The notes under the pieces: model-generated
Database searches by the model: none
Told to the model about the DNA's origin: nothing
What the model saw: the letters and a program-made list of their open reading frames with translations, nothing else
Position numbers and translations under genes: made by a program
Shown here: positions 1 through 43,129 of the stretch, piece by piece
How the letters are laid out: each line of letters opens with the position of its first letter
Position numbering within the stretch: the stretch's first letter is position 1
Assembly: GCF_902713615.1 (NCBI RefSeq)
Contig: NC_052160.1
Span: 137,620,737 to 137,684,736, forward strand
Source of the DNA: Scyliorhinus canicula
Lineage: Eukaryota
Reading direction: 5' to 3'
Length of the DNA: 64,000 nucleotides

Positions 1-1544
1 TCTCCACTCTCCGGAGAGTCGGCAGACCGCCGTCTCGGCAGCGTCGCGCAATTCACGCCCGGCCAGACGATTCTCCGGCCTGGGCTGAGAAAATCCCGCC
101 CAGTATCTCATTAATTCCCCTGCCCATACCCCTCAGGGTCATGAACACCTCTATCAAGTCTCTTCTCAGCCTTATTTTCTCCAAGGAAAACAGTCCGAAC
201 TTCTCCAATCCATCCTCATAGCTACAGATCTTAATCCCTGGAATCATTCTTGTGTATCCCCTCTGTACTGCCTCCCATGCCTTCAAAACGTCCTCATGTA
301 TGACGGCGAGAACGGGACACAATCTCAACATGAGACCTAACCACCCAGAAGGTGAAAAATAGTAAAATCTCAGAAATAATAATACTGATCCACTTTGTTT
401 TTCTCTATGCGTAGCGTCTTATACAAGTTCAACATGACGTCCTTACTCTTGTACACAATGCCCCGATAGGATTGCTTATTCTATCTTCTGATAAGACTCA
501 AAAGTCCGGTTGATTGGAGGTGTCCAAAATACAACTTTTATTTGCTAATTATTCACCTTAATACACTTGCAAAAAAACTAAATCAAAATCGTTGATCAAA
601 ATAATACAGAAACTTGTCAGAACATAGCGAAAAGCGTAAAACATAAAGCAGAAGAAAAGTTCAAATAAAATTACGTCAAAACAAATTAAGTCGATAGATC
701 GTTCAAAAATTCATGAAAGCATAAATTTGGACCAACCCCTTAACCACGAGGTCTTTCTCTTAAGGAGATTTCTATCGATGGTCTAATCCCTCATTCACTC
801 TCATTGGTTTCAAATACTCAGCTGAGACCTCCTGGTTTATTCAAATAGATGTTTGTCACTTAGAAGATGATTTATTAATCAAACATTGGTCATTACTTGA
901 GATTTACTAATGTCCATCAAAATTAATTCAGTGTCTACATGCGCACCACTGTACGAGGATAAGATGCTCCCGTCATGGCGAGCTATTAACCTTGCTGTTG
1001 CTAATTATCTGATACATTTTCATTACTAAATGCACTAGAATACAATGGTCTATACATTATACAAAATATTTTATGAAACAATGTCTGAATTTATGCAGGC
1101 ATGGCACCAAAGTTCAAGAGTGTATTCATTATCTGAAACAGTGACTATCATTCTGCAGTTAGGGTGTCTTGAATAATTTTCTTCTCAAGCTATACACTCA
1201 ATCAATCCTTAAAGGCAGCAAATAAATAAATCAATCAATAATTTGTCAGTCTGTATTAATAAAGCCTAAGATCCTATTAGCTTTATTAACATCTCCACAT
1301 GCCCTGCCAGCTTCATATGCATCTCCAGTGATATCCATCTGGGCACCTCCTTTGGAGCTTCTCCCATTGTTTTCTGCTGTCTCTCCATTTTCTTCCTGCC
1401 AAAATGAATCACCTCACACTTCTCTACATTGAACTTCATATGCCACTTGTATGTATAATCCGCCAGCATATCTGTCCCTTTAAAGTTCAAGACTATCCTC
1501 ATCACAGTTGACAAAGGTTCCACTCCACATATTATATTGCTTAA

Positions 1545-1985
1545 CCACACTCAAGAAACGTGGCACCATCCAGGACAAGGCAGCCCACTTTATTGGCACC
1601 CATCCACAAACATTCAGCACTGGCGCAAAGAAGCGCCATGTGTACCATCTACAAGATGCAATGCAGGCACTCACCAAGGTTCCTTAGATCGCACCTTCCA
1701 AACCCACGACCACTACCATCTAGAAGGGCAAGAGCAGCAGATACCTGGGAACCCCACCACCTGGAGGTTCCCCTCCAAGTGATTCACCACCCTGACTTGG
1801 GAAGATATCGCCGTTCCTTCACTGTTGTTGAGTCAAAATCCTGGAACTCCCTTCCTAACAGCACAGTGGGTGTACTTACACCACAGCAGTTCAAGCAGGC
1901 TGCTCACCTCCATCTTCTCAAGAGAAATCAGGGATGGGCAATCAATTCTGATCTACCCAGTAATGTCCATGTCTCGTGAAGGAAT
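1545..1985 (+). mobile_element. CR1-clade LINE 3' fragment (copy B ~25256-25695)
   Basis: LLAPIHKHSALAQRSAMCTIYKMQC...HLPNPRPLPSRRARAAD. The same family occurs at ~21050-21200 (+) and ~51590-52250 (-). Confidence 0.7.
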
Positions 1986-2290
1986 AACTATAAAATTAAT
2001 TACTAATACAGTTTACTTTCATGCTGTGTATTTTATTACTGGGGTTTGGACTGGCACCTTGTGGTCTGCTGAAGTGCGTGGCTGTGTTTACTGTATACAA
2101 GTCCTATTTTACCTGTGTTTATGGGCGGCCCAAGCCCTCCTAGATATGTGCGCAGGCTGGAAAATGGACAAATCTCAGTGCATTCACTATTACGTGTCAC
2201 AATTCCTCGGGACGCTAAAAGGCTAAAAATACTCATCATGGGGTGTAAGCACTTTTATAATGTACTAATGATAGCTTCCTGTTTAACTAG

Positions 2291-2407
2291 AGAAGCTGAA
2301 CTGAACAGTCACCGTTTATGGACTCTATTCCGCTGGCTGCTCTTTGCTGCTCTGGCTGTTTGCACCGTTTCAGTCACATGTTGGACACGATTTGCAAAGA
2401 AATCCAG
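2291..2407 (+). CDS. Gene 1 transmembrane exon (activating-type, Arg in TM); upstream exons lie outside the window
   Basis: tttaactag|A GAA...TCC AG|gtatga, phase 2-2. Encodes EAELNSHRLWTLFRWLLFAALAVCTVSVTCWTRFAKKS. Paralog of 26004-26120. Confidence 0.75.
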
Positions 2408-2930
2408 GTATGATCATTTAAATCTCATGATTCTAATATTCAAGGTGATTTCGTTCAGTTGAAAAGCTCAAGCACTTTGAAAGTTGCCTCAAAATAATAG
2501 GTCAAAGATCCAAAATAAAATACCCACTGCTCATAAACTCCAAGTGAGTGAAGCATTGTCACCATTCCGATGTTATAACGATGGCTTTTACCGTAAGCTT
2601 TATGCCTGTCGACTGCAGTTGGTCTGGAGTTTTTGTTCTCAAATGGAAATCCATGAGAGAGGACAAATCAGAGCAGGCAGATGATACAAAAACATTCACA
2701 TACATTGATCACTGACTGATTACAGAACATAACTGCAGTGATATCACGGTAGTGTTGCAATTCACTGACGGACCACTAAGAGTCTCACTCGTATATAGGT
2801 GAATTCAGCTGACCAGACATTGGCTGGAGGAAGGAAAAGAGGGAGCTTGCATGTGACATGATTTTGCTGTTGTTCATCTGCTGTCTTGTATAGTTTATCC
2901 GTTTCTAACTTTAACTACAAGTGTTCTTGT

Positions 2931-2936
2931 AATAAA
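2931..2936 (+). terminator. Candidate polyadenylation signal for the activating-type genes (copy B equivalent 26643-26648)
   Basis: AATAAA about 520 bp after the TM exon, present in both copies. Confidence 0.3.
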
Positions 2937-5301
2937 TTAGACCATCCAACAAGAACATTACAACAACTACCTGATGATATGGGCTGAATTTTAACGATCA
3001 ACAGGGAGAGAAATGGAGGTAAAACCCTGGGAAGCAGAATCAGATCAGCTCCTCGACACAGTCCTCCCATCGGGGTAATTTACTGGCCGTGGGGGGGGGG
3101 GGGGGGGAGTGGGCAGGCTAATTGCCCCATGGAGACAGACAGACGATTTACAGATGTCAAGGCGCCTTTTTTTAAGTATTAATTTGTGGGATGTGGGCGT
3201 TGCTGGGTGGACCAGCAGCAAGGCCCATTTTACAGGGCTGTCTACATTTAGCCAACAACGTGGCAACTCCCTGTCACATGTGGTGGAGGCACCAGCTAAA
3301 TGGAGTCAACCTCTGAGCGACAGCCCAGCTGAGGGGAGGTTTTAAGCAGCAAATAGAGAGCCCTGGGGGCAGACAGGCCTTGGGGCCTCAACAAACCTGT
3401 AGAGATCAGGTCTCCCTTCTGCCTCTGGAGACAACACCACTCCCGGTGTTCCTGCTGAGTTACTGACCCTCTGGCTGAGTCGACAGTTCTGTGGGCAGAC
3501 GGCCATCCATAATAGGCGGCTACCCACAAAATTTAACTGGCAGACTCTCCGCCCACTCGTGGTGACGCACATTCCCTCCCAATGTCGGGGCTGCCGCGCT
3601 CATGGAGGTGAAACCTGCCTTATGTAACCGCTTGACCCAGTCACAACCCACGTGAGTGCAGCACAAGGTCAAGTGTGGAAAACTGATCAGCTTTTGGTCA
3701 TTTACCCAATATCTCCTTCTGTGGCTCAGTGTTGTTGTCGACACTTTACTACATTAAAGGAGATATAAAAGTGCAGGTTGCCATTGATGCTGTAGATATT
3801 GTGTCACCGACAGAATTACCATTTCCAGTTAGTGCCTGTGGTCCGTGTACTTTGTCTGAAAGTATGCTCTAGTTCCTGACCATCGATGTGTGTATCCCAC
3901 TTAAATGATTCTACCAGAAAGCTGCTGTGAATTGTAAAATAAAGAATGTAATTTATTCTCATCCATGCCATTCTCATTCCAAAATAGGTGCAAATAAATA
4001 TATCGGGTCAAACCTGTAGGGGAGCTGATGGGCCGCACACTGTTGTCCACTCTGGAATTGACCCTCGGTCATGACGATACCAGGTCACCCCCTCACCAAC
4101 AGCAGACAGGCATGAAGGTGACCCGACTCCCCCCCCCCCCCCCCCAACCCCCCCACCAGCTCCCTCATCAAAACCACCCATCAAATCCCCCAACAAACCC
4201 CCGATCAGAGGTTCCTGTCAGTCACTCGTGCCTGAAAGTTGAAGAGAAGTCCAGGAAGTAGAGCAAAAATCACTGCATTTTCACTTCCCCTTCCCTAACA
4301 CCTGCTGCCTCAGGCAATAATGTTTAACACAGCAGCTTTGCCAGAGGCTTCCTTGAAGACCAAGTACACTGAAAAGGCTTCAAATCCCTCGATAAGCTTT
4401 GAAATGCAAATCTTCCATTCAATTCCACGCAACAATACATTTCATTAGCCAGTGATGACAGTTTTAATACTCCAGAGACACTTGCTAGGTGGATTGTTTA
4501 TCTTTCTTTCCCTTCAGACTTGACTGCATCTCAAATAGCCTGTTGTGATGCTAACCACAATGTTTATAAACACTCTTGCCATGATTGACAGATTCTCATC
4601 ACATCAAAAGCAGCTACGTGCTTTCTGCTGTGGGGGCAAGCTCTTCCCCATGCATAAATTAGCATGGGTAAGGAGAGAGACTCACATTCCGGGCGCTGCT
4701 CCTAACGCCAGCAGAGACCAGTAGCGATTCTCCACTGGCAAGAGCATCTATGATCCATAGTGGAGAATGCTGACCTTCATCTTAAATCAATGCCTACGTT
4801 CAAAGGCAAATATGAAACAGGGGATGGGAGAAGCATCAACAGCGTTCCTGGATCAGGCACAGTGTGTTGCATTGTTCAACCTGGGACCCAGTGCCATGGG
4901 CACCAATTGCAAAATAGAAAGTTCCCCAAACCCCAGGTAAGTTGAACAATATCAGAGTTAGACGTTATGGCAGACCAATCTCACCATTTGGATCAGAATA
5001 TTGCCATCCACCATCTCCCCTGCGTATTATTGCCTGGTAGCCCTTCACGTGAAACACTTTTGAAAGAAGGACAATCAATTCATTTTCTACAGGTCAGTTG
5101 CTTAAATTAATTTCTTATTCAGTTCCCCAGGACAGCAAATGAAGGGTTAAACGTAAACATCAACCACAGAACACGAATGGATCAGAGCGGCACTCGAAGA
5201 CTGGCCAGAGGATCAGAGCCTAATGTCCAGAACATTTTCACTTGCTTTTAGAAGTTACGCTCCAATGTTATTTCATACTTGATTATAATTTGAAATTTCT
5301 C

Positions 5302-5524
5302 TGTATTAGAGAACGCGCCCTGCTGGTGGAACATCATCTGATCTATAGTGATGTCAGCAGAGTGTTTGTGTGGTCTTCAGTTCTCCATCTTAGATTGTAT
5401 GAGTAACATCTCCTAATAAACCTCGCATCTTGTTTGTCAGAAATCCATGCCTGCGGCACCTCCAAACCTTTTCTCTTTGCAGAAAATTGAGAACATAATA
5501 AAAGCAAAAACTGGCGACGAGGAT
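5302..5524 (+). mobile_element. Gypsy-type 5' LTR remnant with tRNA-Ser primer-binding site (copy B PBS 29222-29234)
   Basis: Starts TGT, contains AATAAA, and is followed by TGGCGACGAGGAT at 5512-5524, complementary to the 3' end (...ATCCTCGTCG-CCA) of vertebrate tRNA-Ser(GCU). Confidence 0.6.
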
Positions 5525-5691
5525 TGAGGCAAGAAACAATACCTGCCGAGGGACTGAAATCGCCGGCGCAAAAAGAGGAGGCGGCGACTAGAGCGGTGGA
5601 GGAGATTCTGCGGACTGGACGTTGAAGTCGATCGTAAGAAAGGGCACTGATGCAGGAGGTTTAAATAAGAATAAAACAAAGATATCCGTGA

Positions 5692-5960
5692 TGTGTTGTT
5701 CCTTGTCACTGAATAAAGCTCGTAGTCTTAAAGTTGTGGTAGATGCTTATTGTGAGTTTGTTCTCTCTCCAGCGCTTAAACTATGTTATATCTGAGCTGC
5801 CTGTCTGTGTTCTGCTCCCAGCTGCAGTTCCTGTGAAGTGACCCCTAACTTCCTGTCTGTCTCTATTTATACCTCTCCCGTGCTCCCTCTAGTGCTTGCT
5901 CAGTTGTATTGCATCTACATTGCCCCCTCGTATATTTACACAGATATACAGATCACTACA
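5692..5960 (-). mobile_element. Solo LTR (copy B 29402-29671)
   Basis: TGT...ACA termini, flanks CGTGA/CGGGA (5-bp TSD with one mismatch), TATAAA on the minus strand. Confidence 0.7.
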
Positions 5961-6341
5961 CGGGAGTTGGCAGAACAAAAGTTTCGAAATGTTTTCTTGC
6001 CGCCGGATGCCAATGGATTCTAGGTCAGTGTTTCTAGGCCATATTGGTCTGCTGCGGGAAGGATGCAAGTGTGGCTCGACCGCCGACGCTTCTGCGAAAT
6101 CACCCTTGCATCATGCCTCCCGACAAGGCCGATCTTTTCTCTCCGTGACTGCTAGGCTCCCTCTGCAGCTGCCAATTGAATGCTGCATTCGAAATCCGTT
6201 CTCTTCCCAACAGCTGCCGGGCACGTGCCCACCCAGTTAGCAGAGCACCAATCGCTCGGGCCAAGACAAGGGAGGCCATTTTCAGCTCATACAATGCACC
6301 GGTTGTGAGGTCTTTGCTGGGCGCTGTGGAGAAGGCCAACA

Positions 6342-6570
6342 AAATTATTTTTCTTTCAATATAAATTTAGAGTATCCAATTCATTTTTTTCCAATTAGCG
6401 TGACCAATCCACCTACCCTGCACATCTTTTGGGTTGTGGGGGCGAACCCCACGCAAACACGGGGAGAATGTGCAAACTCCACACGGACAGTGACCCAGAG
6501 CCGGGATCGATCCTGGGACCTCGGCGCCGTGAGGCAGCAGGGCTAACCCACCGCGCCACCCAGGGATAAT
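6342..6570 (-). mobile_element. HE1-like SINE (copy B ~30053-30272)
   Basis: Reverse complement of the 20679 family (GGGAGAATGTGCAAACTCCACACGGACAGTGACCC). Confidence 0.8.
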
Positions 6571-7260
6571 CCACTGTGCTGCCTAGGAGAAGGCCAAAAA
6601 CAAGGCCTTGCCAAATGTTTGGTCACTGGCTGCCATTAACGTGATGTCGGGCAAGGCAGCCAAATCCTCAATGTGAAATGTACCCAGAGAGAAGCTGCAG
6701 CTGCTCCTGTATTCCCTGGGAGTCTCTGTCTGTTATGTTTACTCTGGGACTTTACAGGAAGCGATGTAACTACTCAGAGCCCAAGACACAGAGCAGGCGG
6801 TGAATTGATTTGAAAGGAATACTTTTGTGTCTATGAAATGGCCCATTCTTTGAACATATACAAAATGTCACACCCCCCAAGGATTAATGATTTATTGAGA
6901 CAGAATGCATAGCTTAATTAAAGTACACTCAACGATATATAATAGAAAAATGTTGAGGAAATATATACACCTGTATTTATCTCACGGCGACCGGCGATTC
7001 TCCGGCCCGGATGGGCCGAGCGGCCTACCGAGCCCAACCGGTTCACGACGGCGCCAACCAAATCTGGTCACTGCCGGCGTGAACAGCGTGCGACCGGTGA
7101 GTGTGGGGCCTGTGGGGGATGGAGGGAGGATCGAGCACCACGGGCGTGCTCAGCAGATGTCTGGCCCGCGATCGGTGCCCACCGATCGTCGGGCTGGCGT
7201 CGCTAAAAGACGCAATCTTTTCCCTCCGCCGCCCCGCAAGATCAAGCCGCCATGGAAAAC

Positions 7261-7830
7261 TGTGAGACAGGGGTACAGCGCCCCAGGAATGATGAACCTG
7301 ACCAAATGGTATTTTTTAATGTTAAAACAAACTTTAATTTAAACACAGAATTAATCACATTGACATCAAATAAATAGCTTTACAATTAACAGTTAAACAG
7401 TTCTAAATGAAAGGAAAAACCTTAACTCGCTCAGTACACCTGCTTCTGTACATATTCCAACTAAGCAACCCAATGCAGGTCAAAATCCACTCAGAAGTAA
7501 AGTTAGCAATCAGGGTTGCTTGTTGTTGTCTGGACTTGTTGGCCAGACCTTTGGAGAGAGACCCTTTCAGGAACAACCTGAATCTGTCTTGTCAGATTCA
7601 AATCCTATAGCAAAACCATAGACACACAGGCCCCTCTTATTAATTATATCCCACTAAGATGTCCCATGACCTGCTTAGATGTCCCATGACCTGCTTAGCT
7701 GGGACTAAACAAAATCCCTCAAATTATCTACACTCCAGGGAACCTCCAGCAATTAAAATAATGTTCAATCCACCATCTCCCTGTAAACAAGTAAATGGTT
7801 AAAATCAAAGAATTCTTCAAATTTACTACA
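7261..7830. mobile_element. Probable solo LTR (copy B 30977-31525)
   Basis: TGT...ACA termini and LTR-like composition, but no clear TSD. Copy A has a 20-bp tandem duplication at 7657-7696. Confidence 0.45.
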
Positions 7831-8429
7831 CCTTAATTACCGCTTTGGTAGACACAATGCCTGTCAATATTGTAAACCAGGGTTTTTAATATCATTATTG
7901 CCACAAATTTAAAATAATACGTTGATCAAACTATTATAATTTTCGCTGGAATTATTGTTACACTGAATATAAGGGCTTTGAATTAAAGTGAAGTTCAGTC
8001 CGAATGCGGATTTAAACTGATCTCCCAGAATGAATGGTCGTACAATGGGCAAAACGCTTTGCTGCAGATTGCTGAATTGTGGCACAGTTTATGCCCCCTC
8101 CCCTAGTATGTGACTGGCCACAGTCGGTTCGCTACTACAATGTGGGGTGTTTATAAGCAATCAATTTGGCTGAAAAAAAAAGTGTTTGTGCTGTGGAATT
8201 ATATTTCTCATTGAAGTGTGCCATTTTGCTGGACAGGTTGGGAAGCACTGGTCTGGGCTGCAGGAACCACACGCCTGGCGGAATGAAACGGGCTGTGGGA
8301 TTAGGGATTCAAAAGTCTTTCCGATTCTGTGCATGTCACTAAGCCAATAAGGCAAACCAGAGTCCAGGCAAAAGAGACATTTTTATGTTGCATTGTGGAT
8401 CAGGAGACCTCTTGTTTCACACATGATAA

Positions 8430-9590
8430 AAAAACGGAAGGGAGGAAAGTTGATCGAAGTATATTCCCGAGGCGCCGGTATCTGGAATTGCGGGAAATGG
8501 TGGCACCGTGGATACATTTGATGATGACGGTGAGTGTTGGAACTTGCATCGAGAGAGCTTTCCACTTGTCCTCCTAGCGACTCAAACATCTGTGAACCTC
8601 AAAGATTGCAATATTTCTCAGTTCGGTAAGGTGTAAAACTTTTATGCTGTTGTAAACCTTGGTCCACCCAGCAAAGCTGGGAGAGAAGACCTACAACAAA
8701 TGGATGAAAATTCTAGAAGGGCATTTCTGACCGTGACCACTTATAATTACAGGAAGGTTTCGTTTCCAGTCAGGAAGAAGGTTACAATTCTTGGTGACCT
8801 TAAGAAAGTGAACAAAATGCAAAGAGTTTGGTACTACAATTGACGACACCCTTTGGGACAGGCTGGTATGAGTCCTCCACAACAAAGCTGTTCAGAGGAA
8901 GCTGCTTACTGTCAGAGATTTAACTCTCAAATCAGCTGGAGAAATTGCCACGTCAATGAAGCTCGCAGCAAAAGCCGATTCACAGATAGGAGCTGGAGCG
9001 AAGATGCACAAAATGGAGGCCGCCAAAAACAAGTCTGCAAGGGTTCGACCGTGTCATCGACGAGCAGAAAGTTGGACACTCAATGGGGAAATGCTGGAGA
9101 ACAGAAAATAAGTGCATAAGTGCTGTGGTAAAAAGGGTCATGTTGCCAAAGTGTGCTGGGCACGGCAAACCTCACCAACACTTAAGATGTGTAAGAGAAA
9201 AAATATATCTCAACCTACTCGTCGAGTTTACATGTTAATAAACTAAGTTCGAGACCCCTCAGGGGATGATTTGTCAGGACAGGGTGATTAACAATGTCTT
9301 TGGGGACTCCCAAAACTAGATGGTAACCAAATCAAACTGGAAACATATATGGGTGCAGCTGTATCATTGATACCAGAGACTATTTATAATCAGAAGTTCG
9401 AGCACCTGCCATTAATACCATTAAATGTTAACCTATACACACAGAGGTCAGACCACTAAAAGGCTATATTACAGTAAAATGGAAGTAAATGAAACAGCGG
9501 TGTCGCCTCTCCACGTTGTCCGTGGAAGCTTTCCTTTTTTATCTGGTAGCGCACGGTTGGGAAACATTGGGCTGGATTCTCCGATTGAGA
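8430..9590 (+). mobile_element. Degenerate Ty3/Gypsy gag-protease fragment, copy A
   Basis: Broken frames give TL(W)DRLV..LHN...QRKLLT (gag), a CCHC knuckle C..CGKKGHVAKVC at ~9115-9155 and a decayed aspartic protease ..GAAVSLIPE at ~9350-9380. Confidence 0.8.
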
Positions 9591-9599
9591 GAATAACCG

Positions 9600-12500
9600 C
9601 TGACTCTGTGGCTGGAAGGTCCAGGGTCCCGATGGCGGCATCGGTCCCAAAGCAATTCAGGACAGCACTCGCGGCACGTGGAACCAGTGTGATTCCATCT
9701 GCCGCCGGCGCTGGATTTGCTGCAGTCAGGATTGGTACCGGAGAGGCTGACAAGCTGGAGCTGCGGATAAGAGCTCCACTCCCCACACACTCTCATTCCA
9801 GCCAAGAAACTGGCTCCCCAGAGAGCGGCCCCGGGATTCACAGATGCAGAGTTGGAGGTATTGCCAGATGCTGTGGAGGAGACACAGGAACCCTGTTCCC
9901 CGGAGTTGGATGGAGGTTACTACCCGCCGTGTTAACTGGGCCTGGCCGCAGGTGGCAGGAGAGCCGTGGGCCCCACCGCGAGGGCCGGTTAGCAGTGCCG
10001 GGCAAAGCTGCACAAACTCCTCAGGGTGGCCCAGGTGAGTCACCGCCTCCTGCCCCTGGCGCCACTCCTGCCCCACCCACCCCACACCCATCCCCACAAC
10101 CACCCCCCACCCCCATCATGCCAACACCCATCCGACTCACCATGGGGTGTGCCCCGCACACACAGGTCACCATCTGCAGACCCCGTGCACTGCCCATGTC
10201 CGAGTGTCTTACACTGCGCATAATCTGTCCCCCAGGATAAGGTGGTCCATAACCGCAGGGAGGCAGAATAGACTGGGGAAGGGGGGGGGGGGGGTCTGCC
10301 GGACATGCGGCCCCTCACCATCGTGGGGCAGAGGGTGTCGGACCTGTTTGGCGGGGTGAGGAAGCGGGTAGTCGCAGAAGCGGAAGTCGGCATGAGATAC
10401 CCCCATTTCGTTACGATGTGCCTATGGCACATGAGTCACCCCTCACTGCCCCCCCCACACCGCGCCTCTCCGCAATTTCACCGTACGTTTTGCACTGTGT
10501 CCTGCAGGGTCACCACCAGACCAGGCGGAATCGGCCTGTGTCCCCGCTCCCAGCTACAACCCCACGACTCACCAGGCCATGAGACGGGACACCGCTCCCC
10601 ACCCGCCCCCCCTCCGCCGCAATCCCACATCACTCCGTGGCACATGTCCAGGGACGGCACCGACATCTGGTCACACCTGTCAGCGGCACCCTCCACCACC
10701 CAGAGACACTCAGTTGGAAGAGGCTCCTGGGACACTATCTGTTGAGCAGCAGGCACATGCAGCGATGCATCAGGTGGAGGTGGGAACGCGCGAGGGGTCG
10801 GACGGTCGGAGGACAGCCCGACCCCAGGGACCAGCTGCCGTCCAGAAGGGTCGGGTACTTCTGCACGGAGTGGTCCCATCAATGCTGGAGATGCAGACTC
10901 AGAGCCGGGGACTACGGGAGGGGGTGCCAGCAAACATCCAGCACCTGCAGGTGCAGTTGGAGGAGTACAGCCCCCTGCAGGAGGCGGTGCCGACCATGTT
11001 TGCTACCCAGGCCAACACCGCATGGGTGGCATCCATGTGGAGGACATGGGTGTAAAGGTATAAAACATGGGTCAGGATATCCAAGGCATGGGGCATCTTG
11101 TGCGGGCAGTGGCTGAGGCACAGGTCAGGGTGGCCATGTGTCAGGGCCACATGGACATTGCTGCGGCATGCCAGAGCACGGCCCTACACAACAGGCTCTG
11201 GCTGCGGGAGTCAAAAGCATTGGCCTGTTCCTGGATGATCAGAGCCAGACATAAAGGAACCTGGCACAGTCCCTGAGTGAGATGGCCCAGTCCCAGAGGG
11301 ACGTGGCGTAGTCCCTGTGCTCCATGGACGCGAGTATTGAGACCCTGGTCGGTATGAGTGCAGACCTCCAGGACTGGCAGTGCCAGGTGATGGCAGAGCT
11401 CCCGGAGCTCGCTCTGGTCACACCCCCATCCCAAAGAGCAGCGCAGGGGCCATCAGGGACCCTGAGGGTGGAGGAGGTGATAGGGCACTGGGAGTGCCAG
11501 TGTGCCAGGGAGAATGTAGCAATTGCCACGGTGCATACATCTGCTATTCCTGTTCAGACTGTGCTCTGCCCCTCCCCCCGCGTCTCCCCCTGCAGATGAG
11601 CAGTTCTTTGGAAGGGTGTACTGAGTGATGCCATCACCTGGAGGGTCACTGGCTAAGCTGGGCCATGCACGCCCTGTACATGGGTTGCCAAGAATCTGGG
11701 GGTGCCTAGTGGGATGGCTTGAAGGGGGGCAGGGCCCCCATATAGCCGTTGGTGCTCTGCACATTGACGGTCATGGTGGGCAGTCAGCGAATTGCCCAGC
11801 CAGATGGCCACAGCAATGGTGGTGCGTGCCCGTGTCGTATTCAATATTTTCCCCGCTTCGGGACTGTGATAGAGAAATTCAAACAACATTCATTACGTAA
11901 GCAAAACTGAACTTTATTTACGAATTAGAACTGACTGCTAGCAGTATGGCTGAGACTTGAAGTCGGAAGGCAGTCAAATACAAACTGCTTGGTCCGTCCC
12001 AAGTCTGCGATATTACAGAAGAATAAGGCGATTTGTATACATTATAGGATCAAGATAACATGAATACAGCTTGGTCAGGAATTTGATCGAAAGTAAAACA
12101 TAAATAATACTCGTTACAATGGCGTCTCCTTGTTGACCTTTAGAGGACTCGGGTCTCATGTCATTATCTTGTCTTTGTTTTAAGCGATGGACAAATTTGT
12201 TTACGTACAGGAAGAGACAGTTTTTTAGCTTATCGAATATATTTAGACTCCTCTGGTCTCATGACGAACGCGTCTTATCTGAGTTTTAGAGTCAGCCAGT
12301 TCTCAGGTCAAGTTGACCTCAGCTGTTTGTATCTGTGCCTTAGGTTATGTGAAGTCAGTTTAAATTCAATTGTACCAAGAAGACTTGACAAGTTTTCCCA
12401 TCATGCCATTATTTGCTTCGCACAATACCACACTCGGACAAACCGGACTTGGGAGGACATTCCCGGACCTCGGGCCATCTCCTGGTCACACCCCCCAATA

Positions 12501-14576: not shown

Positions 14577-14588
14577 AAAGAGGAACTG
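14577..14588 (+). promoter_or_regulatory. Candidate PU.1/SPI ETS site upstream of gene 2
   Basis: AAAGAGGAACTG about 120 bp before the ATG, plus a second GAGGAA at ~14612. Motif match only. Confidence 0.45.
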
Positions 14589-14705
14589 AGAAATTTGGCT
14601 GCAATTTGAAGGAGGAAATGACAAATACAAAGTAGAAAACCACCAGAGTGAAAGACAGCAGAGCTCTGAGCTGGGAGACATCACCCACCCAAAACACTCC
14701 AAACA

Positions 14706-32100: not shown

Positions 32101-32122
32101 ACCTCTTGTTTCACACATGATA

Positions 32123-33280: not shown

Positions 33281-36200
33281 AGAATAACCGCCGACTCTGT
33301 GGCTGGAAGGTGGATGTTCCAGGGTCCCGATGGCGGCATCGGTCCCAAAGCAATTCAGGACGGCACTCGCGGCACGTGGAACCAGTGTGATTCCATCTGC
33401 CGCCGGCGCTGGATTTGCTGCAGTCAGGATTGGTACCGGAGAGGCTGACAAGCTGGAGCTGCGGATAAGAGCTCCACTCCCCACACACACTCATTCCAGC
33501 CAAGAAAATGGCTCCCCAGAGAGCGGCCCCGGGATTCACAGATGCAGAGTTGGAGGTATTGCCAGATGCTGTGGAGGAGACGCAGGAACCCTGTTCCCCG
33601 GAGTTGGATGGAGGTTACTACCCGCCGTGTTAACTGGGCCTGGCCGCAGGTGGCAGGAGAGCCGTGGGCCCCACCGCGAGGGCCGGTCAGCAGTGCCGGG
33701 CAAAGCTGCACAAACTCCTCAGGGTGGCCCAGGTGAGTCACCGCCTCCTGCCCCTGGCGCCACTCCTGCCCACCCACCCCACACCCATCCCCACAACCAC
33801 CCCCCACCCCCATCATGCCAACACCCATCCGACTCACCATGGGGTGTGCCCCGCACACACAGGTCACCATCTGCAGACCCCGTGCACTGCCCATGTCCGA
33901 GTGTCTTACACTGCGCATAATCTGTCCCCCAGGATAAGGTGGCCCATAACCGCAGGGAGAGAGAATAGACTGGGGAGGGGGGGCTTCCAGACATGCGGCC
34001 CCTCACCATCGTGGGGCAGAGGGTGTCGGACCTGTTTGGCGGGGTGAGGAAGAGGGTAGTCGCAGAAGCGGAAGTCGGCATGAGATACCCCCATTTCGTT
34101 GCGATGTGCTTATGGCACATGAGGCACCCCTCACTGACCCCCCCCCCCCCCCCCCCCACACCGCGCCTCTCCGCAATTTCACCGTACGTTTTGCACTGTG
34201 TCCTGCAGGGTCACCACCAGACCAGGCGGAATCGGCCTGTGTCCCCGCCCCCAACTACAACCCCACGACTCACCAGGCCATGAGACGGGACACCGCTCCC
34301 CCACCCGCCCCCCCCTCCGCCGCAATCCCACATCACTCCGTGGCACATGTCCAGGGACGGCACCGACATCTGGTCACACCTGTCACCGGCACCCTCCACC
34401 ACCCAGAGACACTCACCTCAGTTGGAAGAGGCTCCTGGGACACTATCTGTTGAGCAGCAGGCACATGCAGCGATGCATCAGGTGGAGGTGGGAACACGCG
34501 AGGGGACGGGCGGTCGGAGGACACCCGACCCCAGGGACCAGCTGCCGTCCAGAAGGGTCGGGTACTTCTGCACGTGGTGGTCCCATCAATGCTGGAGATG
34601 CAGACTCCGAGCCGGGGACTACGGGAGGGGGTGCCAGCAAACATCCAGCACCTGCAGGTGCAGTTGGAGGAGTACAGCCCCCTGCAGGAGGCGTTGCAGA
34701 CCATGTTTGCTACCCAGGCCAACACCGCATGGGTGGCATCCATGTGGAGGACATGGGTGCAAAGGTATAAAACATGGGTCAGGATATCCAAGGCATGGGG
34801 CATCTTGTGCGGGCAGTGGCTGAGGCACAGGTCAGGGTGGCCATGTGTCAGGGCCACATGGACATTGCTGCGGCCATCCAGAGCATGGCCCTACACAACA
34901 GGCTCTGGCTGCGGGAGTCAAAAGCATTGGCCTGTTCCTGGATGATCAGAGCCAACCATAAAGGAACCTGGCACAGTCCCTGAGTGAGATGGCCCAGTCC
35001 CAGGGGGACGTGGCGTAGTCCCTGTGCTCCATGGACGCGAGTATTGAGACCCTGGTCGGTATGAGTGCAGACCTCCAGGACTGGCAGTGCCAGGTGATGG
35101 CAGAGCTGCCGGAGCTCCCTCTCGCCACACCCCCATCCCAAAGAGCAGCGCAGGGGCCATCAGGCACCCTGAGGGTGGAGGAGGTGATAGGGCACTGGGA
35201 GTGCCAGTGTGCCAGGGAGAATGTAGCAATTGCCACGGTGCATACATCTGCTATTCCTGTTCAGACTGTGCTCTGCCCCTCCCCCCGCGTCCCTCCCTGC
35301 AGATGAGCAGTTCTTTGGAAGGGTGTACTGAGTGATGCCGTCACCTGGAGGGTCACTGGCTGAGCTGGGCCACGCACGCCCTGTACATGGGTTGCCGAGA
35401 ATCTGGGGGTTCCTAGTGGGATGGCTTGAAGTGGGGCAGGGCCCCCATATAGCCGTTGGTGCTCTGCACATTGACGGTCATGGTGGGCAGTCAGTGAATT
35501 GCCCAGCCAGATGGCCACAGCAATGGTGGTGCGTGCCCGGACAACCCGGACTTGGGATGACATTCCCGGACCTCGGGCCATCTCCTGGTCACACACCCCG
35601 CTACTCCCCCTGCCCTCAGCCAGCGGCACTGCTATCAGCCCAGGGTTGGGCCTCTAGAAACATGTCTTACCTCCTCTCTCACCCTCAGCAGCACAGCAGG
35701 GTGCCAGTTTGGAAGGCTGCCTTAATCAATTCCATCCCCCTTTAAGGTCCCGCCCCCCGTTTTCAATCCCCCCTCAACCCTCCAACCTTGGGGTGCCCCC
35801 GGGAACGCTCTCAACCCCCCCCCCCCCCCCCCCCCCCCACCTCCCCATCCGTAAAGAACAGGAGGGGAAAATCCCAGCCAATGCCTTTCATGATTTCCAT
35901 TGACAGGATTGAAATAATGAGAAGCACAGCAACATAACACTGGCGAACAAAACATTCAAACCAAATAGGTTTTAGCTCCCATATCCAGACAGAAAACGAG
36001 CCTGACTATACAGCTTTCCTCAAGTCTGTTCCAATAAACTGGTGCTGACGTATACTTCATGGAAGCCGCTTTTTTACAGGTGGACTTCAGTCAGTGCAGA
36101 TACAGATTACCGCTTTGTGTTTTTAATTTTCATGCCATGTATAATTAACAGCTGGCCAGCGTTTGGACTGTGTGAGGAAGCCGGAGACCCACAGAGAAAC

Positions 36201-37306
36201 CCACGCAGCCACGGGGGCGAATGTGCAAACTCCACACAGACGGTCACCCAAGGCCGGAAGTGAACTCGGGGCCCCTGGCGCTGTGAGGAAGCACTGCTAA
36301 CCACAGATAAGAGGAGGGAAGACATTTGCCACGTTTTGCGAGGGCCCCAAAGAATCCAGCACAAGTTGAAGGATGGAAAGAAATAACATTTATTTACAAT
36401 AACGTATATACGCAGCAGCAGCAGCAGCAATTTCCCTAGCTGCTCACTCTCCTCTAGCCGGTTCCAAACTGGCCAGCTTTATTTATGCAGGGAGTCTGCT
36501 GACGATTTCTCCGCCTCCCCCCCCCCGCCGCCTCATTGGGGAAGCTCATACTCCCAAAGGATTGTTGGATTGCCATTAGTCCCCAGCCAGTGGTAAGCAG
36601 GCAGGTTATAACACCATGAGACTGCATAACCGGTCATGTACTCACAGAATATGCTGTTTAAACGTGCGGATCGAGACAGTGCAGAATGGCCTTTGTTAAT
36701 TTGGAGACACGCATTTGGACATCAGTGCAGACTGTGTTCCAGAAAACGTTTAGGCTCCAACACGGCAGGCATAAAAATATATTGTAGTTACCGAAATGAT
36801 GCAGCAGGAACCAAGTAAACTCATTAACCTCTCTAATTAGCTCAATCCTGGCCGACAAAAATCCCCCTCATGGTCAGAAAGTGGGGAAAACGGTTTCCGC
36901 AGCCGGCGAGGAATTTTATTCTGAGAGGTAAGTTGATGATGGAACGCGATTTGGGGAGAATGTTGATTGGAAAGTTATTTTCTTGCTCGTGAAAGTAACC
37001 TCCCTCAGCTGCCACATTTATGTTGTCACGGTGATTGATTAGAATAGAGTCTATTCAACAGACTGTTTCCCTTTTCGAAACGTGTGAGGAAGCACTTGGA
37101 ACTGTTAATGTGTAAGAAGAGGTTAAAGAGTAGTCTACCTGAATACAGAGTATTAGAATTTACCATTAAGGTGCCTAAACTGAAACAGACCCCTCCCCAT
37201 TTATTTAGTCTCCGGAATGTAAGTGTCCCACGACCCAGGCCTTTAGTCAGGTTGGGGAACATGGATACAGGCTCTGCAGTTGGTGCCCGACCTCTTTCAC
37301 ATTCTG

Positions 37307-37318
37307 AAAGAGGAACTG
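37307..37318 (+). promoter_or_regulatory. Candidate PU.1/SPI ETS site upstream of gene 3
   Basis: Same AAAGAGGAACTG motif in copy B. Confidence 0.45.
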
Positions 37319-37435
37319 AGAAATTTGGCTGCAATTTGAAGGAGGAAATGACAAATACAAAGTAGAAAACCGCCAGAGTGGAAGACAGCAGAGCTCTGAG
37401 CTGGGAGACATCACCCACCCAAAACACTCCGAACA

Positions 37436-37475
37436 ATGGAATTAATTGCTCTTCTAATTCTAATGCCGGTATCAA
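37436..37475 (+). CDS. Gene 3 exon 1, signal peptide
   Basis: Identical to 14706-14745 (MELIALLILMPVS + A|gtgagt). Confidence 0.87.
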
Positions 37476-40400
37476 GTGAGTTCCTTTTTTTTTAAACGTT
37501 GATCTTTAATATTCTTAAAAAGCATTTTTTTGCAACCTGAGCTGATGCGACCCAGAAACACTGAACTGACTCAGGCACCGGTGGTTTTGTCGGTGTGAGC
37601 TGCGGATGGTGTTACAAGTTGTAGGTGTTGTTGGAAAAGCCACGAATCTGCTCCTCCAGCATCTTCAATCAGCCTTCGCTCCTTTCCGCGCTTCCCCCTC
37701 TGCATTCTCACTCCATCTGCCTCGTCGCAGCTCTGTCTTCCCTGAAACACCAGCTCTTCATCAATCACAGGAAACTAACTGTTTGTTCTCTTTTCAGTTT
37801 AACACAACAAGTTCTGTGGGGGGGGGCACCTTGACCTCAGTAAAAGCTCTCAAGCAGATTCACATGGTGTTCCCTCAGCAGGTTGCATAGATGAATAGGG
37901 AACCTAGAAGACATGTATGTGTGTCTTAAAAGGCAAACTGTGGAATATTCTTCTTCTGTATAGAAGTAGATTTGGAGAACAAAGACTCACAATCGGCTGT
38001 TTTATTTCAGCCAAGATCACCAGCGTGAGAATAGACATTGAGTGGTTCTTTCTGTTTAAATGAATCTGCATTGCGACACATGTCTTTACCAGGGATTATT
38101 TCATCATATTTCTCAGCATCAGCTCGGAGCTGACAATTCTCTTCCTGTACCTGTTCATGTCGTCCGACATCATTTCCCATCTGCTTTTTAGTGACGAAAT
38201 TAGCACAGGCCACCTCCTTAGCCAATTCAGTCTTTGTGTGTTTACAAACTAACGGAGCCACAGAGAACCTGCCTTAACCCCCCTGTCCCCCTATTGCATG
38301 GTTATCTTGTTGAATCAGAACCGTAGAATTTCTGCAGTGCCGAAGGAAGCCATTCAGCCCATTGAGTCTGCACTGACCCTCTGAAAGAGCAGCCTACCAA
38401 GGCCCACAACCCCAACCCTATCCCCGGAACCCATAACATCACCCAACTTGCACATCTTTGGACACTAGTCTGTGGGATGAAACCGGAGCACCCGGAGGAA
38501 AACCACACGGACACAGGCAGAAAGCTCAAACTCCACACAAAAAGTAGCCGAAGGCCAGGATTGAACCCGAGTCCCTGGCACTGTCAGGCAGCAGTGCTAA
38601 CCACTGTGTCACCCTGCTGTCTCTCAGACATTGATGCTTAGATTTAAAACCCTAGTTTCAGTTTGATCGACATCACTTTCAAACTTAGTGTGAAGTATTT
38701 TCATATTGTGGTCACTCTTTCCGAAATACTATTATTAATTAGCCTATTTTCATCGCACAATACTGGATCTAAATTAGCAAGTTCCTCAGTGCACTATTCT
38801 AGACATCCATCTCCCATACATTCCATGAATTCATCTTCCACAACATTAATACTAATTAGGTTCACCTAACCTATTAGTACATTGATAAATAAATAATCAA
38901 TAACCTTTATTGACACAAGCAGGCTCACATTAACACTGCAATGAAGTTACTGTGAAAAGCCCCTAGTTGCCACATTCCGGCGCCTGATCAGGAACACAGA
39001 GGGAGAATTCAGAATTCTCAGCTGATACGGGAATTGAACCCACGCTGCTGGCCTTGTTCTGCATCACAAACCAGCTGTCAAGCCCACTGAGCTAAACCAG
39101 CCCCCAAAGCTTCCAAGAACATTGTATTATTTTTGTCAGACAGATCGCTAATTTCCTGATGTATATTGTGGTTTACTAAACCAATACTATTTGGTGGCCG
39201 ATAGACTACGCCCACCAATGTTTTCTGCCTGTTGCTGTTTCTTAGTTCCACCCAAACTAATTCGATGGGTGCAATTTAATAGAAAAACAGAGTCCCGCTT
39301 TGGGCGCATTTACCACGGTGTTTCCGACGCTTGGTAGCACAGAGAACGATCCCGCTATTATATAGGACTCTTTTTCCGGCCTCGGAGAGGAACGCCCCAC
39401 TTGGACTCATTTCCCGCTCAGCTTGCCAATGCAGGAAGAGATCTGGGCACCAATTTTAAATGGTGCCCAATTCTCAACCACCCATTGCAGCCTCCGGGTC
39501 CCACCCAGTGCCCCAATTTACCAATTAGGGGCTCCACGAGCCACCCCATAATCCATCTCATTAGGGCCGGGCAGCCCCTGTCCCAATCCCTGGCACAGGT
39601 AACCTGGCACATAGGTGCCTTGATACTGCCAGCCTGAGATCCTGGCAGTGCCCATGCCCACCTGTCAGTGTTACTTGGGCACCCTGGCAGGGCCAGAGTG
39701 GTAGTGACAGTGTGACACTGCCAGAATTCCAGCGTGGAAGTGCCAAGGTGCCGGCGTGGCATCAGGAGTGCCACCGTGCCCAGAGCCTGACACCCCCAGC
39801 CCTCCGATCGCCACGGCGATCCCCAAATGACATTATGCCTGGCACACATTTGTGGAAACCAGCACCATGGCAGGGTCTCGGAGGTGGGGCCATTCGATTC
39901 TGAGCCTTGCGCAACTTCTCACTAACTACTCACTTGAATATGGCAACGTTAGATCGCGTGAGATATAACAAGCATCGCAAACCTCAAATCCCTGGCGAGA
40001 TATCACAAACGCTGCATCCGCAAAATCCTGCAAATCCACTGGCAGGATAGGCGTCCCAACCTGAGAGCCCTCTCCCAGGACAATATCCCCAATATCGAGG
40101 CACTGGTCGCGCTCGACCAGCTGCAATGGGTGGGCCACATTGCCCGTATGCCCGATTCCCAAGACAAGTGCTCTAATCTGAGCTCCCCAATGGCAAGACA
40201 TCACCAGGAGGGCAGAGGAACCACTACAAGAACACTCTGAAAGTTTCCATAAATAAATGCAACACCCCAGGAACAGGTGGGAATTGGTTGCCTGAGAAGA
40301 AACAAACTGGGAAAAAACATCGGCGCGGAAGCCAATCACCTCGGGCGTCGCAGGGTGGAGCACGCACAGGCCAAGTGTAAACCGTGGAAAGAGATTGAGA

Positions 40401-40633
40401 ATCCAGAATGACCCAACCATCCACCTCATCAATCACCGCCTGCCAGATCTCTGGCAGCGCCTGCGGATCCACGATTGGCCTATTCAGCCACCGCAGAACC
40501 CACCTCCCCAGAGTGGAACCAGTCATCCTCGACCCTGAGGTACTGCCTTGAAGATGAAGTCCCTTGGTGCCAATGTCAGTCTGTCCATCCACACTATGCC
40601 CTTTAATCTTGTCTAAACAATCTGCAAGAATAT

Positions 40634-41306
40634 GGGGCGGGATTCTCCGCTCACTAGCGGGGCGGACTGGACTGACACGATGGAGTGGCGTGAACCACTC
40701 CGGGGTCGGGCACCTTCGGGGGCTAGGTCGGCGCTGGAGGGGTTGGCGTCGCGCCAACCAGCACCGAAGGGCCTCTGCCGGCCGGCGCGTGTTGGCGCAT
40801 GTGCGGGAGCGCCAGCGTGTGCTGGCCTCAACCCAGTGCATGCACAGGGAGGTTCTTCACCGCGCCGGCAATGGCAGACCGCTACAGCGGCCAGCGTGGA
40901 GGGAAAGAGTTCCCCCACGGCACAGGCCCACCCGCGGATCGGTGGGCATCGATCGCGGGCCAGGCCACCGTGGGTGCACCCCCTGGACCAGATCCCCCCC
41001 CCAAGGACTCCGCAGGCCGCCCGCAGAGCCCGGTCCCGCCAGTACGGACCTGGTTTGATTTACGCCGGCGGGACCGGCCGAAAACGGGCAGCTGCGCGGC
41101 CCATCGCGGAGCAGGAAATCGCCAAGTGGGTGCTGACAGCGGCTGCCGACCGGCGCGATTCCCGCCCCTGCCAAAACCTTGCTGCCGGAGAATTCGGCAG
41201 GCGCCGTCGGGGGGGGGGGGGGGGGGGGGGGGGGGCGGTGCGGGATTCACGCCGCCCCACCCCCAGCGATTCTCCCACCCAGCGGGGGGTCGGAGAATCC
41301 CACCCC
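40634..41306. mobile_element. PIF/Harbinger-type MITE, copy B (retains 76 bp deleted in copy A)
   Basis: Termini GGGGCGGGATTCTC...GAGAATCCCACCCC. Confidence 0.8.
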
Positions 41307-42305
41307 TCATACTTGTTGTTCAACTGGAAGGGCTGAAGATCCTGCACTCCCTCCTTCTCAATCCCCTTAACCTACTTGACTCACATGTCACACCCTTCAG
41401 TCCCTGATCACTAAACAAATCAGAGGATGCTAATCAAGACAGTGTGGACTGCCTTCTGGAAAAATGTTTCCAGGTAACGTTCCTGCTCGCTGATGCATTC
41501 CAATGTCCGTGATGTGACCATCAATTCACGCGAGACAGAGAGTTGGATTGCAGTGGTAACCATGAGCCCCCACGTGCTGTAGTCTTAACAAAAACTGCCA
41601 TCTTTGTATCAATTAAATTTATTTTGCTTAATTAATTTGTGGTTCCCCTCTTCACAAAACTCACTCTTGCACACACTTAAGCACTCGTGCACTCATACAC
41701 ACACTCGTGTACTCAAGCACTCAAGCATCCGTGCTTGTCAAGGGTGTCTAGGCCACATGTTTAAACATAAATCTCATCCCTGATACCTTTTTAATTGTTA
41801 TTGCCGGTCCGACAGTTCACCCCACCCTCCATTGATTGAAATTGAAGTTAAATCAAAAGACTCTCTGACTAATCGGCCCTACCAGCAACTGTAAAATTAG
41901 ATGGGCCACGTAAACTTTGCTTTCATTGATCCCTTACTGGGCTAAAGTGCCCCTAAAGTGATTGTGGGTGGGCACACATCTGACCCTCACGTGCACCCGC
42001 CAATTGAAATAATTTGCAAGTGCACAATGACGTTGGGATGAGCTCCTGACGCCTCTCTGTGAGATACACACGCTCCCGGGTCAGGCAGGACCTTGCCAGA
42101 GCAATGTAATATTCTGACCTGTGTACAGGCAGTGATTTGACAGATTGTTGGTGAAATGAGGTGAATGATTGTTGGGGAAATGTGACTTGATCGGTAATTG
42201 CAAAGGAGATTGCCCTAACAATGAAACAGCCGCGTTTACTTGGTTGTTGTTTTTGTTGATTCTGATGAAGCTATTAATAACCTTTCGTCATTAATATCCC
42301 AACAG

Positions 42306-42629
42306 ATTTGTGTCAATTAACTGGACCCAAGAAGGTTTCTGGGGAATTAGGAAGATCAATCACTGTGAACTGTCAGTATGATCGGAAATACGAGGACAAT
42401 GTTAAACTATGGTGTAAAGGTTCTTATTACATAGGAAGTTCTGTTGTGGTTTCCACTGAACATCCAGAAAAAGGAAAAGTAACTCTGACTGACAACAAAA
42501 CACAAGGAATATTTTCAGTGACCATGGATAAGCTAATAAAGAGCGATGGAGGACGATACTGGTGTGTGATAGAAACAAGACTATTTAAATATAATAAAAT
42601 GGTTTCTGTTGACATAGAATTATCTGAAG
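42306..42629 (+). CDS. Gene 3 Ig V-set domain exon, CD300/pIgR/CMRF35-like
   Basis: aacag|AT...GAA G|gtaaga. Encodes LCQLTGPKKVSGELGRSITVNCQYDRKYEDNVKLWCKG...SDGGRYWC, retaining the family W-C-K-G motif. Confidence 0.95.
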
Positions 42630-43129
42630 GTAAGATACTAACGGATTTCCTTTTAATTTATTCAGTCAAAATTTTAACATTTGAAATCAGAAATACCACC
42701 TGTCCCACCAGAGGACCAGCAGATCAACAGACTTGGCAATGTCACCAAACGGTGTGGCCACTGCTGAGGCGACAGGATGACGATGAAGCATCTCCACTCT
42801 GAGGCACCATCAGAGAATAGTATTTACAAAGCTGGGGCCTAGTCGGCAGGCTTCAGCCATCAGGGGGTGCACCTTCCATTATGGGCCATGGAGGCTTCCC
42901 CCTTCCATGGAACCCACTGGGATAAAGGCCAGGGTTTATCTGGATGTCTCAACTTGTGGTGGCAGCTGCTCCCAATACCTGGAAATTGCTGATTGCAGCA
43001 GAACGTGGCCCTTAATTGGGCAATTAATCGGTTTAATTGCAAGGAGACAAGAGGCAGAGAGGTAGCCGGTGGTGTAGTGGTATTGTCACTGGACTAGTAA
43101 TCCAGAGACCCAGGCAAATACTCTGGGCT

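Follow-up and report, generated by a model that had tools for sequence, protein, structure and literature searches.

Several receptor systems are known in which an activating member carries the ectodomain of an inhibitory neighbour, and human FCGR2C is the one closest to the locus analyzed here. FCGR2C belongs to the tandem segmental duplication of the 82-kb FCGR2/3 segment, which has its breakpoints in FCGR2A and FCGR2B (Warmerdam 1993, as reviewed in PMC6786274). The gene combines the front exons of the inhibitory gene with the back exons of the activating gene, and copy-number variation (CNV) driven through non-allelic homologous recombination (NAHR) followed (PMC6786274). Dog CEACAM28 has its 5' flank, leader and N exon in common with the inhibitory gene CEACAM1, to 114 bp into the next intron; this reflects gene conversion over a 2.3-kb tract of two genes that already existed, and purifying selection acts on the N exons (PMC2110893). 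In primates, gene conversion maintains the likeness of CD300A and CD300C (PMC12447643), and unequal crossing over is given as the cause of KIR locus expansion (Martin et al. 2003, cited in PMC2110893). Here, we describe a locus in the 4.2-Gb genome of the catshark Scyliorhinus canicula, contained in a stretch of 64,000 bp (the window; G000:C15:137,620,737-137,684,736) and its upstream flank, where three CMRF35-like receptor genes, named gene 0, gene A and gene B, follow one another. Gene A lies where two copies of a 22.8-kb segment meet, and it joins the front end of an inhibitory gene to the back end of an activating one. A literature search on catshark CD300-like genes found no paper. All coordinates are window positions on the + strand, and negative numbers give bp upstream of the window start.

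Two abutting units and the chimeric gene at their junction

A self-BLAST of the window revealed a long direct repeat (1-19959 versus 22854-42777), 94-98% identical and interrupted by only a few indels; the window contains no N or gap. The self-comparison was repeated after 30 kb of upstream and 20 kb of downstream flank had been added. The first 2.9 kb of unit A, which lie upstream of the window, match 19957-22853 at 96.6%. The apparent 2.9-kb spacer between the copies (19960-22853) is the beginning of unit B, and the copies abut exactly at 19957-19959. The duplication is therefore confirmed as an exact head-to-tail tandem repeat of two units with no spacer (Table 1). When the units were compared by global alignment, 438 of 21,759 aligned positions differed (2.0%). 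In each unit, the activating stalk, transmembrane (TM) and tail exons of one gene come first, then an intergenic stretch of about 9.5 kb, and lastly the next gene's 5' flank, leader and V exon.

A first-pass annotation of the window had described a repeat of about 20 kb that holds the TM exon of one gene and the promoter, leader and V exon of the next, that ends 141 bp into the intron after the V exon, and whose copies lead into different stalk, TM and tail exons. Self-BLAST and the exon models bear out this content, and the continuations do differ: copy A leads into activating exons and copy B into inhibitory exons with a tail containing immunoreceptor tyrosine-based inhibitory motifs (ITIMs). 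The repeat stands, at a corrected size of 22.82 kb with a start 2,864 bp before the window, and its end does lie in the intron, at 148 bp, the figure of 141 bp stopping before two mismatches near the end. The comparison with upstream DNA, which the annotation had recommended for finding the left boundary and counting the units, placed that boundary at -2864. The array of further units that it envisaged is not there: upstream and flank self-comparison and whole-genome V searches gave exactly two units, with no third unit or longer array. A genome-wide DNA search with the V exon found only those of gene A (V-A), gene B (V-B) and, upstream, gene 0 (V0; 73-76% identical), and in a protein search of the genome no match beyond this subgroup of three members exceeded 44% identity.

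Models built from exons with canonical AG/GT sites match three NCBI proteins at every residue: gene 0 is XP_038675620.1 ('CMRF35-like molecule 3 isoform X2', 199 aa), gene A is XP_038675621.1 ('CMRF35-like molecule 3', 198 aa) and gene B is XP_038675542.1 ('CMRF35-like molecule 1', 261 aa). Gene A has an intact open reading frame (ORF) and canonical splice sites in all four introns. The rebuilding of XP_038675621.1 also confirms the register proposed earlier, in which a further unit brings with it a complete activating gene equipped with the inhibitory gene's promoter, leader and V exon. The TM exon with an arginine (Arg-TM exon) is present in two near-identical copies in the genome, and a search for the activating back end among the proteins of other species returned the two catshark proteins only. 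The hybrid intron of gene A contains a SINE-like (short interspersed element) repeat, in which 20729-20778 lies.

The junction sequence reads ...GGCTGCA followed by GGAACGCTGCC.... In a three-way alignment it equals the end of unit A through ...GCAGGA and the start of unit B from GGAAC... (left-boundary sequence from GG(A/G)AC), with only 2-3 shared bases. The left breakpoint (-2864) is 866 bp into the 2,147-bp V-to-stalk intron of gene 0. Because detectable homology between the V0 and V-B introns ends about 76 bp past the V exons, the two breakpoints are non-homologous and out of register. Only GG(A) is shared, and the offsets into the two introns are 866 and 148 bp; therefore, the founding event was microhomology-mediated, and not a homologous unequal crossover or gene conversion. 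The first-pass annotation had proposed unequal crossover or long gene conversion in this register as the way in which whole activating genes are added or removed; as the origin of the present units, these are contradicted by the 2-3 bp of microhomology and the out-of-register breakpoints. Homologous unequal crossover between the paralogues was considered as the origin and is ruled out by the junction sequence. Moreover, the exact head-to-tail abutment is the product of a duplication, and conversion offers no reason for similarity to end at one common point. A minisatellite of 5.5 copies of 40 bp (-3075..-2856; 98% matches) ends with its 3' edge exactly at the left breakpoint and may have been a fragile site for the duplication event.

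The V-to-stalk introns are all phase 1, the leader of 40 nt plus a V exon of 324 or 327 nt leaving one base over. The connection of V-A to the activating stalk is the sole new join, and gene A is therefore the chimera, genes 0 and B being its unchanged parents. The locus thus has the features of an FCGR2C-type event: direct repeats, outer breakpoints within two paralogues, an intact hybrid at the junction and both parental genes kept.

We propose one recent tandem segmental duplication in the S. canicula lineage, which took in the 22.82 kb from one intronic point to another. The join would have used the 2-3 bp of microhomology, either by a replication-based mechanism (template switch) or by end joining between sister chromatids. 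With both introns in phase 1, the junction would have yielded an in-frame third gene, gene A, composed of the 5' flank, leader and V exon of gene B and the stalk, Arg-TM and 10-residue tail of gene 0. In this single step, the inhibitory receptor would have gained a closely matched activating partner. We regard a recent tandem duplication with a chimeric gene A as the probable explanation of the locus as a whole.

Table 1. Positions of repeat units, breakpoints, exons and unit-specific features at the catshark locus
Feature	Position	Strand	Remarks
Duplication unit A	-2864..19959	+	22,824 bp; start C15:137,617,873; window part 1..19959
Duplication unit B	19957..42777	+	22,821 bp; abuts unit A directly
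A/B junction	19957..19959	+	GG(A) microhomology common to left and right breakpoint sequences; three-way alignment
Right boundary	42777..42778	+	148 bp into the 1,379-bp V-to-stalk intron of gene B
Self-BLAST block	1-1542 vs 22854-24392		98.3%
Self-BLAST block	1525-11832 vs 25238-35539		97.3%
Self-BLAST block	12959-18349 vs 35691-41078		98.0%
Self-BLAST block	18343-19959 vs 41148-42777		93.8%
Gene 0 leader exon	-5719..-5680
Gene 0 V exon (V0)	-4056..-3730
Gene 0 stalk exon	-1582..-1495
Gene 0 TM exon with Arg	2291..2407	+	LWTLFRWLLFAALAVC...; exon model
Gene 0 short cytoplasmic tail exon and stop	5123..5150	+	exon model
Gene A leader exon	14706..14745	+	phase 1; identical to gene B leader; within a 496-bp tract identical between units
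Gene A V-set exon (V-A)	19488..19811	+	CD300/pIgR-like
Gene A hybrid intron	19812..21272	+	148 bp gene-B-type and 1,313 bp gene-0-type
Gene A stalk exon	21273..21360	+	activating type; lies in unit B
Gene A TM exon with Arg	26004..26120	+	exon model
Gene A short tail exon and stop	28833..28860	+	exon model
Gene B leader exon	37436..37475	+	exon model
Gene B V-set exon (V-B)	42306..42629	+	exon model
Gene B stalk exon	44009..44114	+	inhibitory type
Gene B TM exon	48040..48146	+	uncharged
Gene B cytoplasmic exon	50285..50337	+	exon model; no such exon in genes 0 and A
Gene B tail exon and stop	55147..55302	+	two ITIM-type motifs, VAYATV and VEYSTL; unique in genome
Inter-unit identical tracts (441-587 bp)	14701-15198, 16015-16457, 17139-17727, 767-1291		and unit-B counterparts
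L1-related insertion, unit B only	24375..25237		863 bp; perfect 18-bp target-site duplication CCACATATTACATTGCTT; empty site in unit A at 1524/1525
Unit-A-only segments	11832-12434 and 12590-12958		span 11832..12958; flank a shared 155-bp piece; unique sequence, no target-site duplication

Receptor family and predicted signalling

The V domains were compared with solved structures, of which pIgR was matched with E = 2.6e-35, CLM-1/CD300f with 2.7e-15 and CD300c/CMRF35 with about 1e-12. They also match the Pfam V-set model PF07686 at 44-46 bits (cut-off 26). The architecture consists of a leader, a V domain, a Ser/Thr/Pro-rich stalk and a single TM segment, followed by either an ITIM tail or, with a charged TM segment, a short tail. 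By sequence, the genes are members of the CD300/CMRF35-like receptor family, which has a pIgR-type V-set domain.

V-A and V-B, encoded by genes 22.7 kb apart, are identical at 91 of 107 residues (85% for protein and 94% for DNA), and their leaders are identical. The extra C-C' disulfide that is typical of, though not strictly defining for, CD300/pIgR V domains is not kept in either of them. Both extra Cys residues are present in V0 and in the S. torazame orthologue; V-B retains the C-strand Cys only, unpaired (LWCKG...IGSS), and V-A has neither (QWRKG...ITSS), the Cys of the WCKG motif having become Arg. The altered site (19593-19595 in V-A and 42411-42413 in V-B) is codon 36 of the 107 in-frame codons of the V exon. 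The extra disulfide is thus decaying, as a derived loss within the CD300 family.

The two motifs in the tail of gene B fit the ITIM pattern S/I/V/LxYxxI/V/L as motif matches, and together with the uncharged TM segment they mark gene B as a putative inhibitory receptor. The activating TM segment of genes 0 and A contains a basic residue (LWTLFRWLLFAALAVCTVSVTCW) and is followed by a tail of about 15 residues without signalling motifs. A basic TM residue with a short, motif-free tail is the classical signature of receptors that use an Asp-bearing adaptor with an immunoreceptor tyrosine-based activation motif (ITAM). Gene A would accordingly be expected to signal through its TM arginine with a zeta/gamma- or DAP12-type ITAM adaptor. 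Two exons in the genome match the Pfam model TCR_zetazeta above its curated cut-off (G000:C7:44542922-44543008 and G000:C6:201010333-201010413), and these are candidate CD3-zeta/FcR-gamma-type adaptor genes for the Arg-TM receptors. Genes A and B thus have the predicted attributes of paired activating and inhibitory receptors.

Transcription was approached through an index of sequencing runs, in which the contigs have been built independently for each run from its own raw reads and sampled 31-mer words are looked up. The expression evidence consists of word shares in runs whose type (RNA or unknown) is guessed. In seven small runs (75-298 M letters, <0.07x genome), 29-57% of the words sampled from 19480-20100 are present. 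About half of this interval is V-A exon, and only 49 of the exon's 294 31-mers are common to V-B. No more than about 8% of the words could come from V-B transcripts, and the small runs therefore contain V-A itself. This suggests that V-A is transcribed, mRNA being the simplest source of the words in these runs. Gene A would be co-expressed with gene B from a near-identical promoter.

Divergence after the duplication and competing explanations

The V exon is the most diverged part of the unit: 20 of its 324 nt differ, with 19 non-synonymous changes and one synonymous change. The non-synonymous divergence (dN) is 0.080 and the synonymous divergence (dS) 0.014, against a non-coding background of 0.0195, so that dN is about four times the background (Fisher p = 9e-7). 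At the protein level 16 of the 107 residues differ between V-A and V-B, and seven of these 16 changes fall within the 15 residues after the F-strand Cys, in the FG or CDR3-like loop (p = 0.004, for an interval chosen post hoc). With the S. torazame orthologue as the outgroup, and by our own reading of the protein sequences, five changes are derived in A, six in B and five are unassigned; because changes fall on both lineages, both genes are changing. Such fast divergence of the V exons may reflect ligand- or pathogen-driven selection. The earlier idea that promoter and ectodomain are kept shared holds for the leader and the proximal promoter, which are still identical, and fails for the V exons. 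Conversion of V-A or V-B from V0 was also considered and rejected: at the 16 differing residues V0 agrees with A, with B, and often with neither.

Along the unit, divergence per interval ranges from 0-1% up to 4-6%. Identical tracts of up to 587 bp occur, the longest tract simulated under a uniform divergence of 2% having a 95th percentile of 449 bp, and one of the identical tracts includes the leader exon with the beginning of intron 1. These tracts may be gene-conversion patches or constrained regions. An L1-related element is present in unit B only, and because unit A has kept the empty site, the insertion is later than the duplication. The segments specific to unit A are probably deletions in unit B. 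Each unit also contains an intergenic GC-rich block (about 60% GC; 9,400-11,800 and 33,100-35,500) with long open frames on both strands. A Pfam scan of ten long ORFs in the unit, those of the GC-rich block included, gave no match, and these ORFs are not genes.

Comparisons with S. torazame and Mustelus asterias are based on gene spans and proteins. A 225-nt non-coding stretch upstream of the leader can be compared between the two Scyliorhinus species because the S. torazame gene model translates it: 21 of its 75 codons are not the same in the two species, a difference of at least 9% of nucleotides, and three codons of this stretch differ between units A and B (1.3%). The S. torazame V domain is equidistant from V-A (75.7%) and V-B (74.8%). 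The spacing from the start of the V0-type gene to that of the inhibitory gene is 29.5 kb in S. torazame and 43.2 kb in S. canicula, and 20.4 kb would be expected for one unit. These values fit a duplication after the split between S. canicula and S. torazame.

The junction was also looked up in the run index. Two sampled 31-mers were queried from the 60 bases 19930-19989 and were present at a share of 1.00 in seven runs, which come from two samples and two studies, with dates of 2019 and 2024. In these 60 bases a 31-mer can start at 30 places, 27 of which are junction-specific, and the 25 junction-spanning 31-mers that extend 2 bp or more past the 3-bp microhomology in both directions each occur just once in 344 kb. 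Because the contigs of a run come from that run's own reads, the junction exists in reads.

Several observations weigh against a recent duplication that produced a working gene A, and they are taken here together with the explanations to which they lend support. The duplication could be real and gene A a neutral by-product on its way to becoming a pseudogene, as human FCGR2C is in most people (PMC6786274). The missing Cys of the WCKG motif in V-A makes a functional loss of gene A possible, and the test of non-synonymous against synonymous changes within the exon does not rise significantly above neutral (p = 0.089). In addition, the RNA support is indirect, consisting of word shares in runs of guessed type. 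Nevertheless, the 198-aa ORF and the splice sites of its four introns are intact, the ratio of dN to the non-coding background goes beyond relaxed constraint, derived changes are found on both lineages, and V-A-specific words occur in the small RNA-like runs. Moreover, the partner Cys is already gone from V-B, so dropping an unpaired Cys in V-A is not obviously damaging. We therefore consider it unlikely that gene A is a mere by-product.

A second explanation holds that the three-gene arrangement is old and has been homogenized by long gene conversion, its young appearance being secondary. The primate CD300A/C and dog CEACAM1/28 pairs are precedents for such conversion (PMC12447643, PMC2110893), and the over-dispersed divergence between the units (index 3.0) and the identical tracts agree with it; later gene conversion between the units may indeed have blurred their age. 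The spacing of 29.5 kb in S. torazame is weak evidence, because the short-read assembly of that species may have collapsed a young repeat. However, the similarity spans the entire 22.8 kb, including the intergenic DNA, and its limit is one point, at which unit B follows directly on unit A; conversion gives no reason to expect this. There is no older, more diverged paralogous DNA between the unit ends, and the V exon, which conversion should have kept similar, is the part that has diverged most. An old arrangement made to look young is therefore improbable.

The possibility that the 22.8-kb segment is single-copy and that units A and B are its two haplotypes, mis-joined in tandem, which the first-pass annotation had named as fatal to its proposal, draws on the adjacency and 98% identity of the units, on junction support that consists of two sampled words, and on the flagging of both junction-word DNA samples as possible sources of the assembly, so that they are not independent animals; it is very improbable, since the junction 31-mers, as words in independently built contigs of seven runs, argue against a mis-join, whose junction would be absent from reads, the window has no gap, two different introns are joined cleanly at base level, the 2% divergence, the 16 residue changes in one exon and the private L1 element with its target-site duplication would be extreme for alleles, and small RNA-like runs carry V-A-specific words beside the annotated V-B gene.

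Neighbouring genes, other sharks and known systems

The recent tandem duplication with its chimeric gene A lies next to other repeated DNA. Just past the window end there is a tandem repeat array about 1.5 kb long (about 65,680-67,170), which matches itself at many offsets with 81-86% identity. From about 78,000 to beyond 314,000 (C15:137.70-137.93 Mb) a downstream array contains four units of about 53-78 kb with 95-99% identity. Sub-repeats of about 17.5 kb lie inside them, and V exons of two kinds, only about 30% identical to V-A/V-B, occur repeatedly in the array. Eight genes of the array carry a relative (KIWTIFRWLLFAA...) of the Arg-TM exon of genes 0 and A, with 66-69% identity over about 29 residues (63-67% in the genome search); no ITIM tail like that of gene B was seen in the downstream array. 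This makes the region a hotspot for recent tandem duplications. In gene 0 itself, a V domain from the lineage of gene B (58% identity to V-B) is coupled to a TM segment of the downstream lineage, which hints that it came from an older event of a similar kind.

In Mustelus asterias, two 'CMRF35-like' proteins encoded on the same 58.7-Mb contig, P0004 and P0005, are 88% identical over leader, V domain and stalk (169 aa) and unrelated thereafter. P0005 has an ITIM tail, and P0004 has another C-terminus with an SSPGQQ motif like that of the catshark activating tail. These proteins suggest an independent pair that shares its front end, with a breakpoint after the stalk exon.

For gene A as for FCGR2C, the direct tandem duplication has its breakpoints within two paralogues that flank it, both parental genes are retained, and the junction gene has inhibitory ectodomain exons and activating signalling exons. 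The degree of similarity between the repeats is also comparable, the FCGR2/3 repeats being >98% identical and the catshark units 98%. However, the catshark family has CD300/pIgR-like V-set domains and belongs to the shark lineage, whereas the FCGR genes encode C2-set Fc receptors. The catshark unit has 22.8 kb and no extra gene, compared with the 82 kb of FCGR2/3; activation is predicted to occur through the TM arginine and an adaptor and not through an intrinsic ITAM; and the junction has 2-3 bp of microhomology, whereas FCGR2C is described as the product of unequal crossover. CNV is seen at FCGR2/3, whereas the catshark locus is known from the assembly sequence and from word presence in two samples. 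By analogy, NAHR between the two direct repeats, which are 98% identical, could plausibly cause gain or loss of gene A, and this would be the copy-number variation that the first-pass annotation had predicted.

As in dog CEACAM1/CEACAM28 and human SIGLEC5/14 (PMC2110893), the activating partner and the inhibitory one are alike in 5' flank, leader and N-terminal Ig exon, and the similarity ends within an intron, at 114 bp in dog and at 148 bp in catshark. Those pairs are explained by conversion, whereas in catshark a whole 22.8-kb unit has been duplicated and the V exon shows an excess of amino-acid change. Mammalian CD300A/CD300C are by sequence members of the same V-domain family, in a birth-and-death cluster, one with an ITIM and one activating with a charged TM segment, with similar ectodomains; this likeness is at the level of the family. 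In contrast to the primate pair, the catshark pair is young and diverging, and V-A and V-B lack the second (C-C') disulfide. The KIR locus resembles the catshark locus in its head-to-tail Ig-receptor genes, its hybrid genes and the gain or loss of activating members by misaligned recombination. There, homologous recombination and population haplotypes are described, whereas the catshark data are at the level of a reference and point to one non-homologous founding event. Catshark gene A is thus a further example of the FCGR2C kind, which differs in family, lineage, non-homologous junction and rapid divergence of the binding domain.

Tentatively, a conserved shark inhibitory CD300-like receptor might have been given front-end-reusing partners repeatedly, by independent, lineage-specific duplications with intronic breakpoints, although we are inclined to doubt it. 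If it were so, gene A would be the youngest case, with a junction that can still be read and V domains in an arms-race burst, gene 0 would be an older product, and the Mustelus asterias pair would have been made separately. The 98%-identical repeats would in addition make gene A copy-number variable in catshark populations.

The origin of activating partners is usually inferred late, from diverged mammalian genes that gene conversion has blurred. At the catshark locus it is readable at base level, in the breakpoints, the phase-compatible introns, the hybrid alongside both of its parents and the burst of changes in the FG loop. The locus has a junction that can be tested by PCR, and it offers a place to measure CNV, the balance of expression and the divergence of ligands in a newly formed receptor pair. 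It would also show the FCGR2C-type route to a paired receptor at work at the base of the jawed vertebrates and in the CD300 family.

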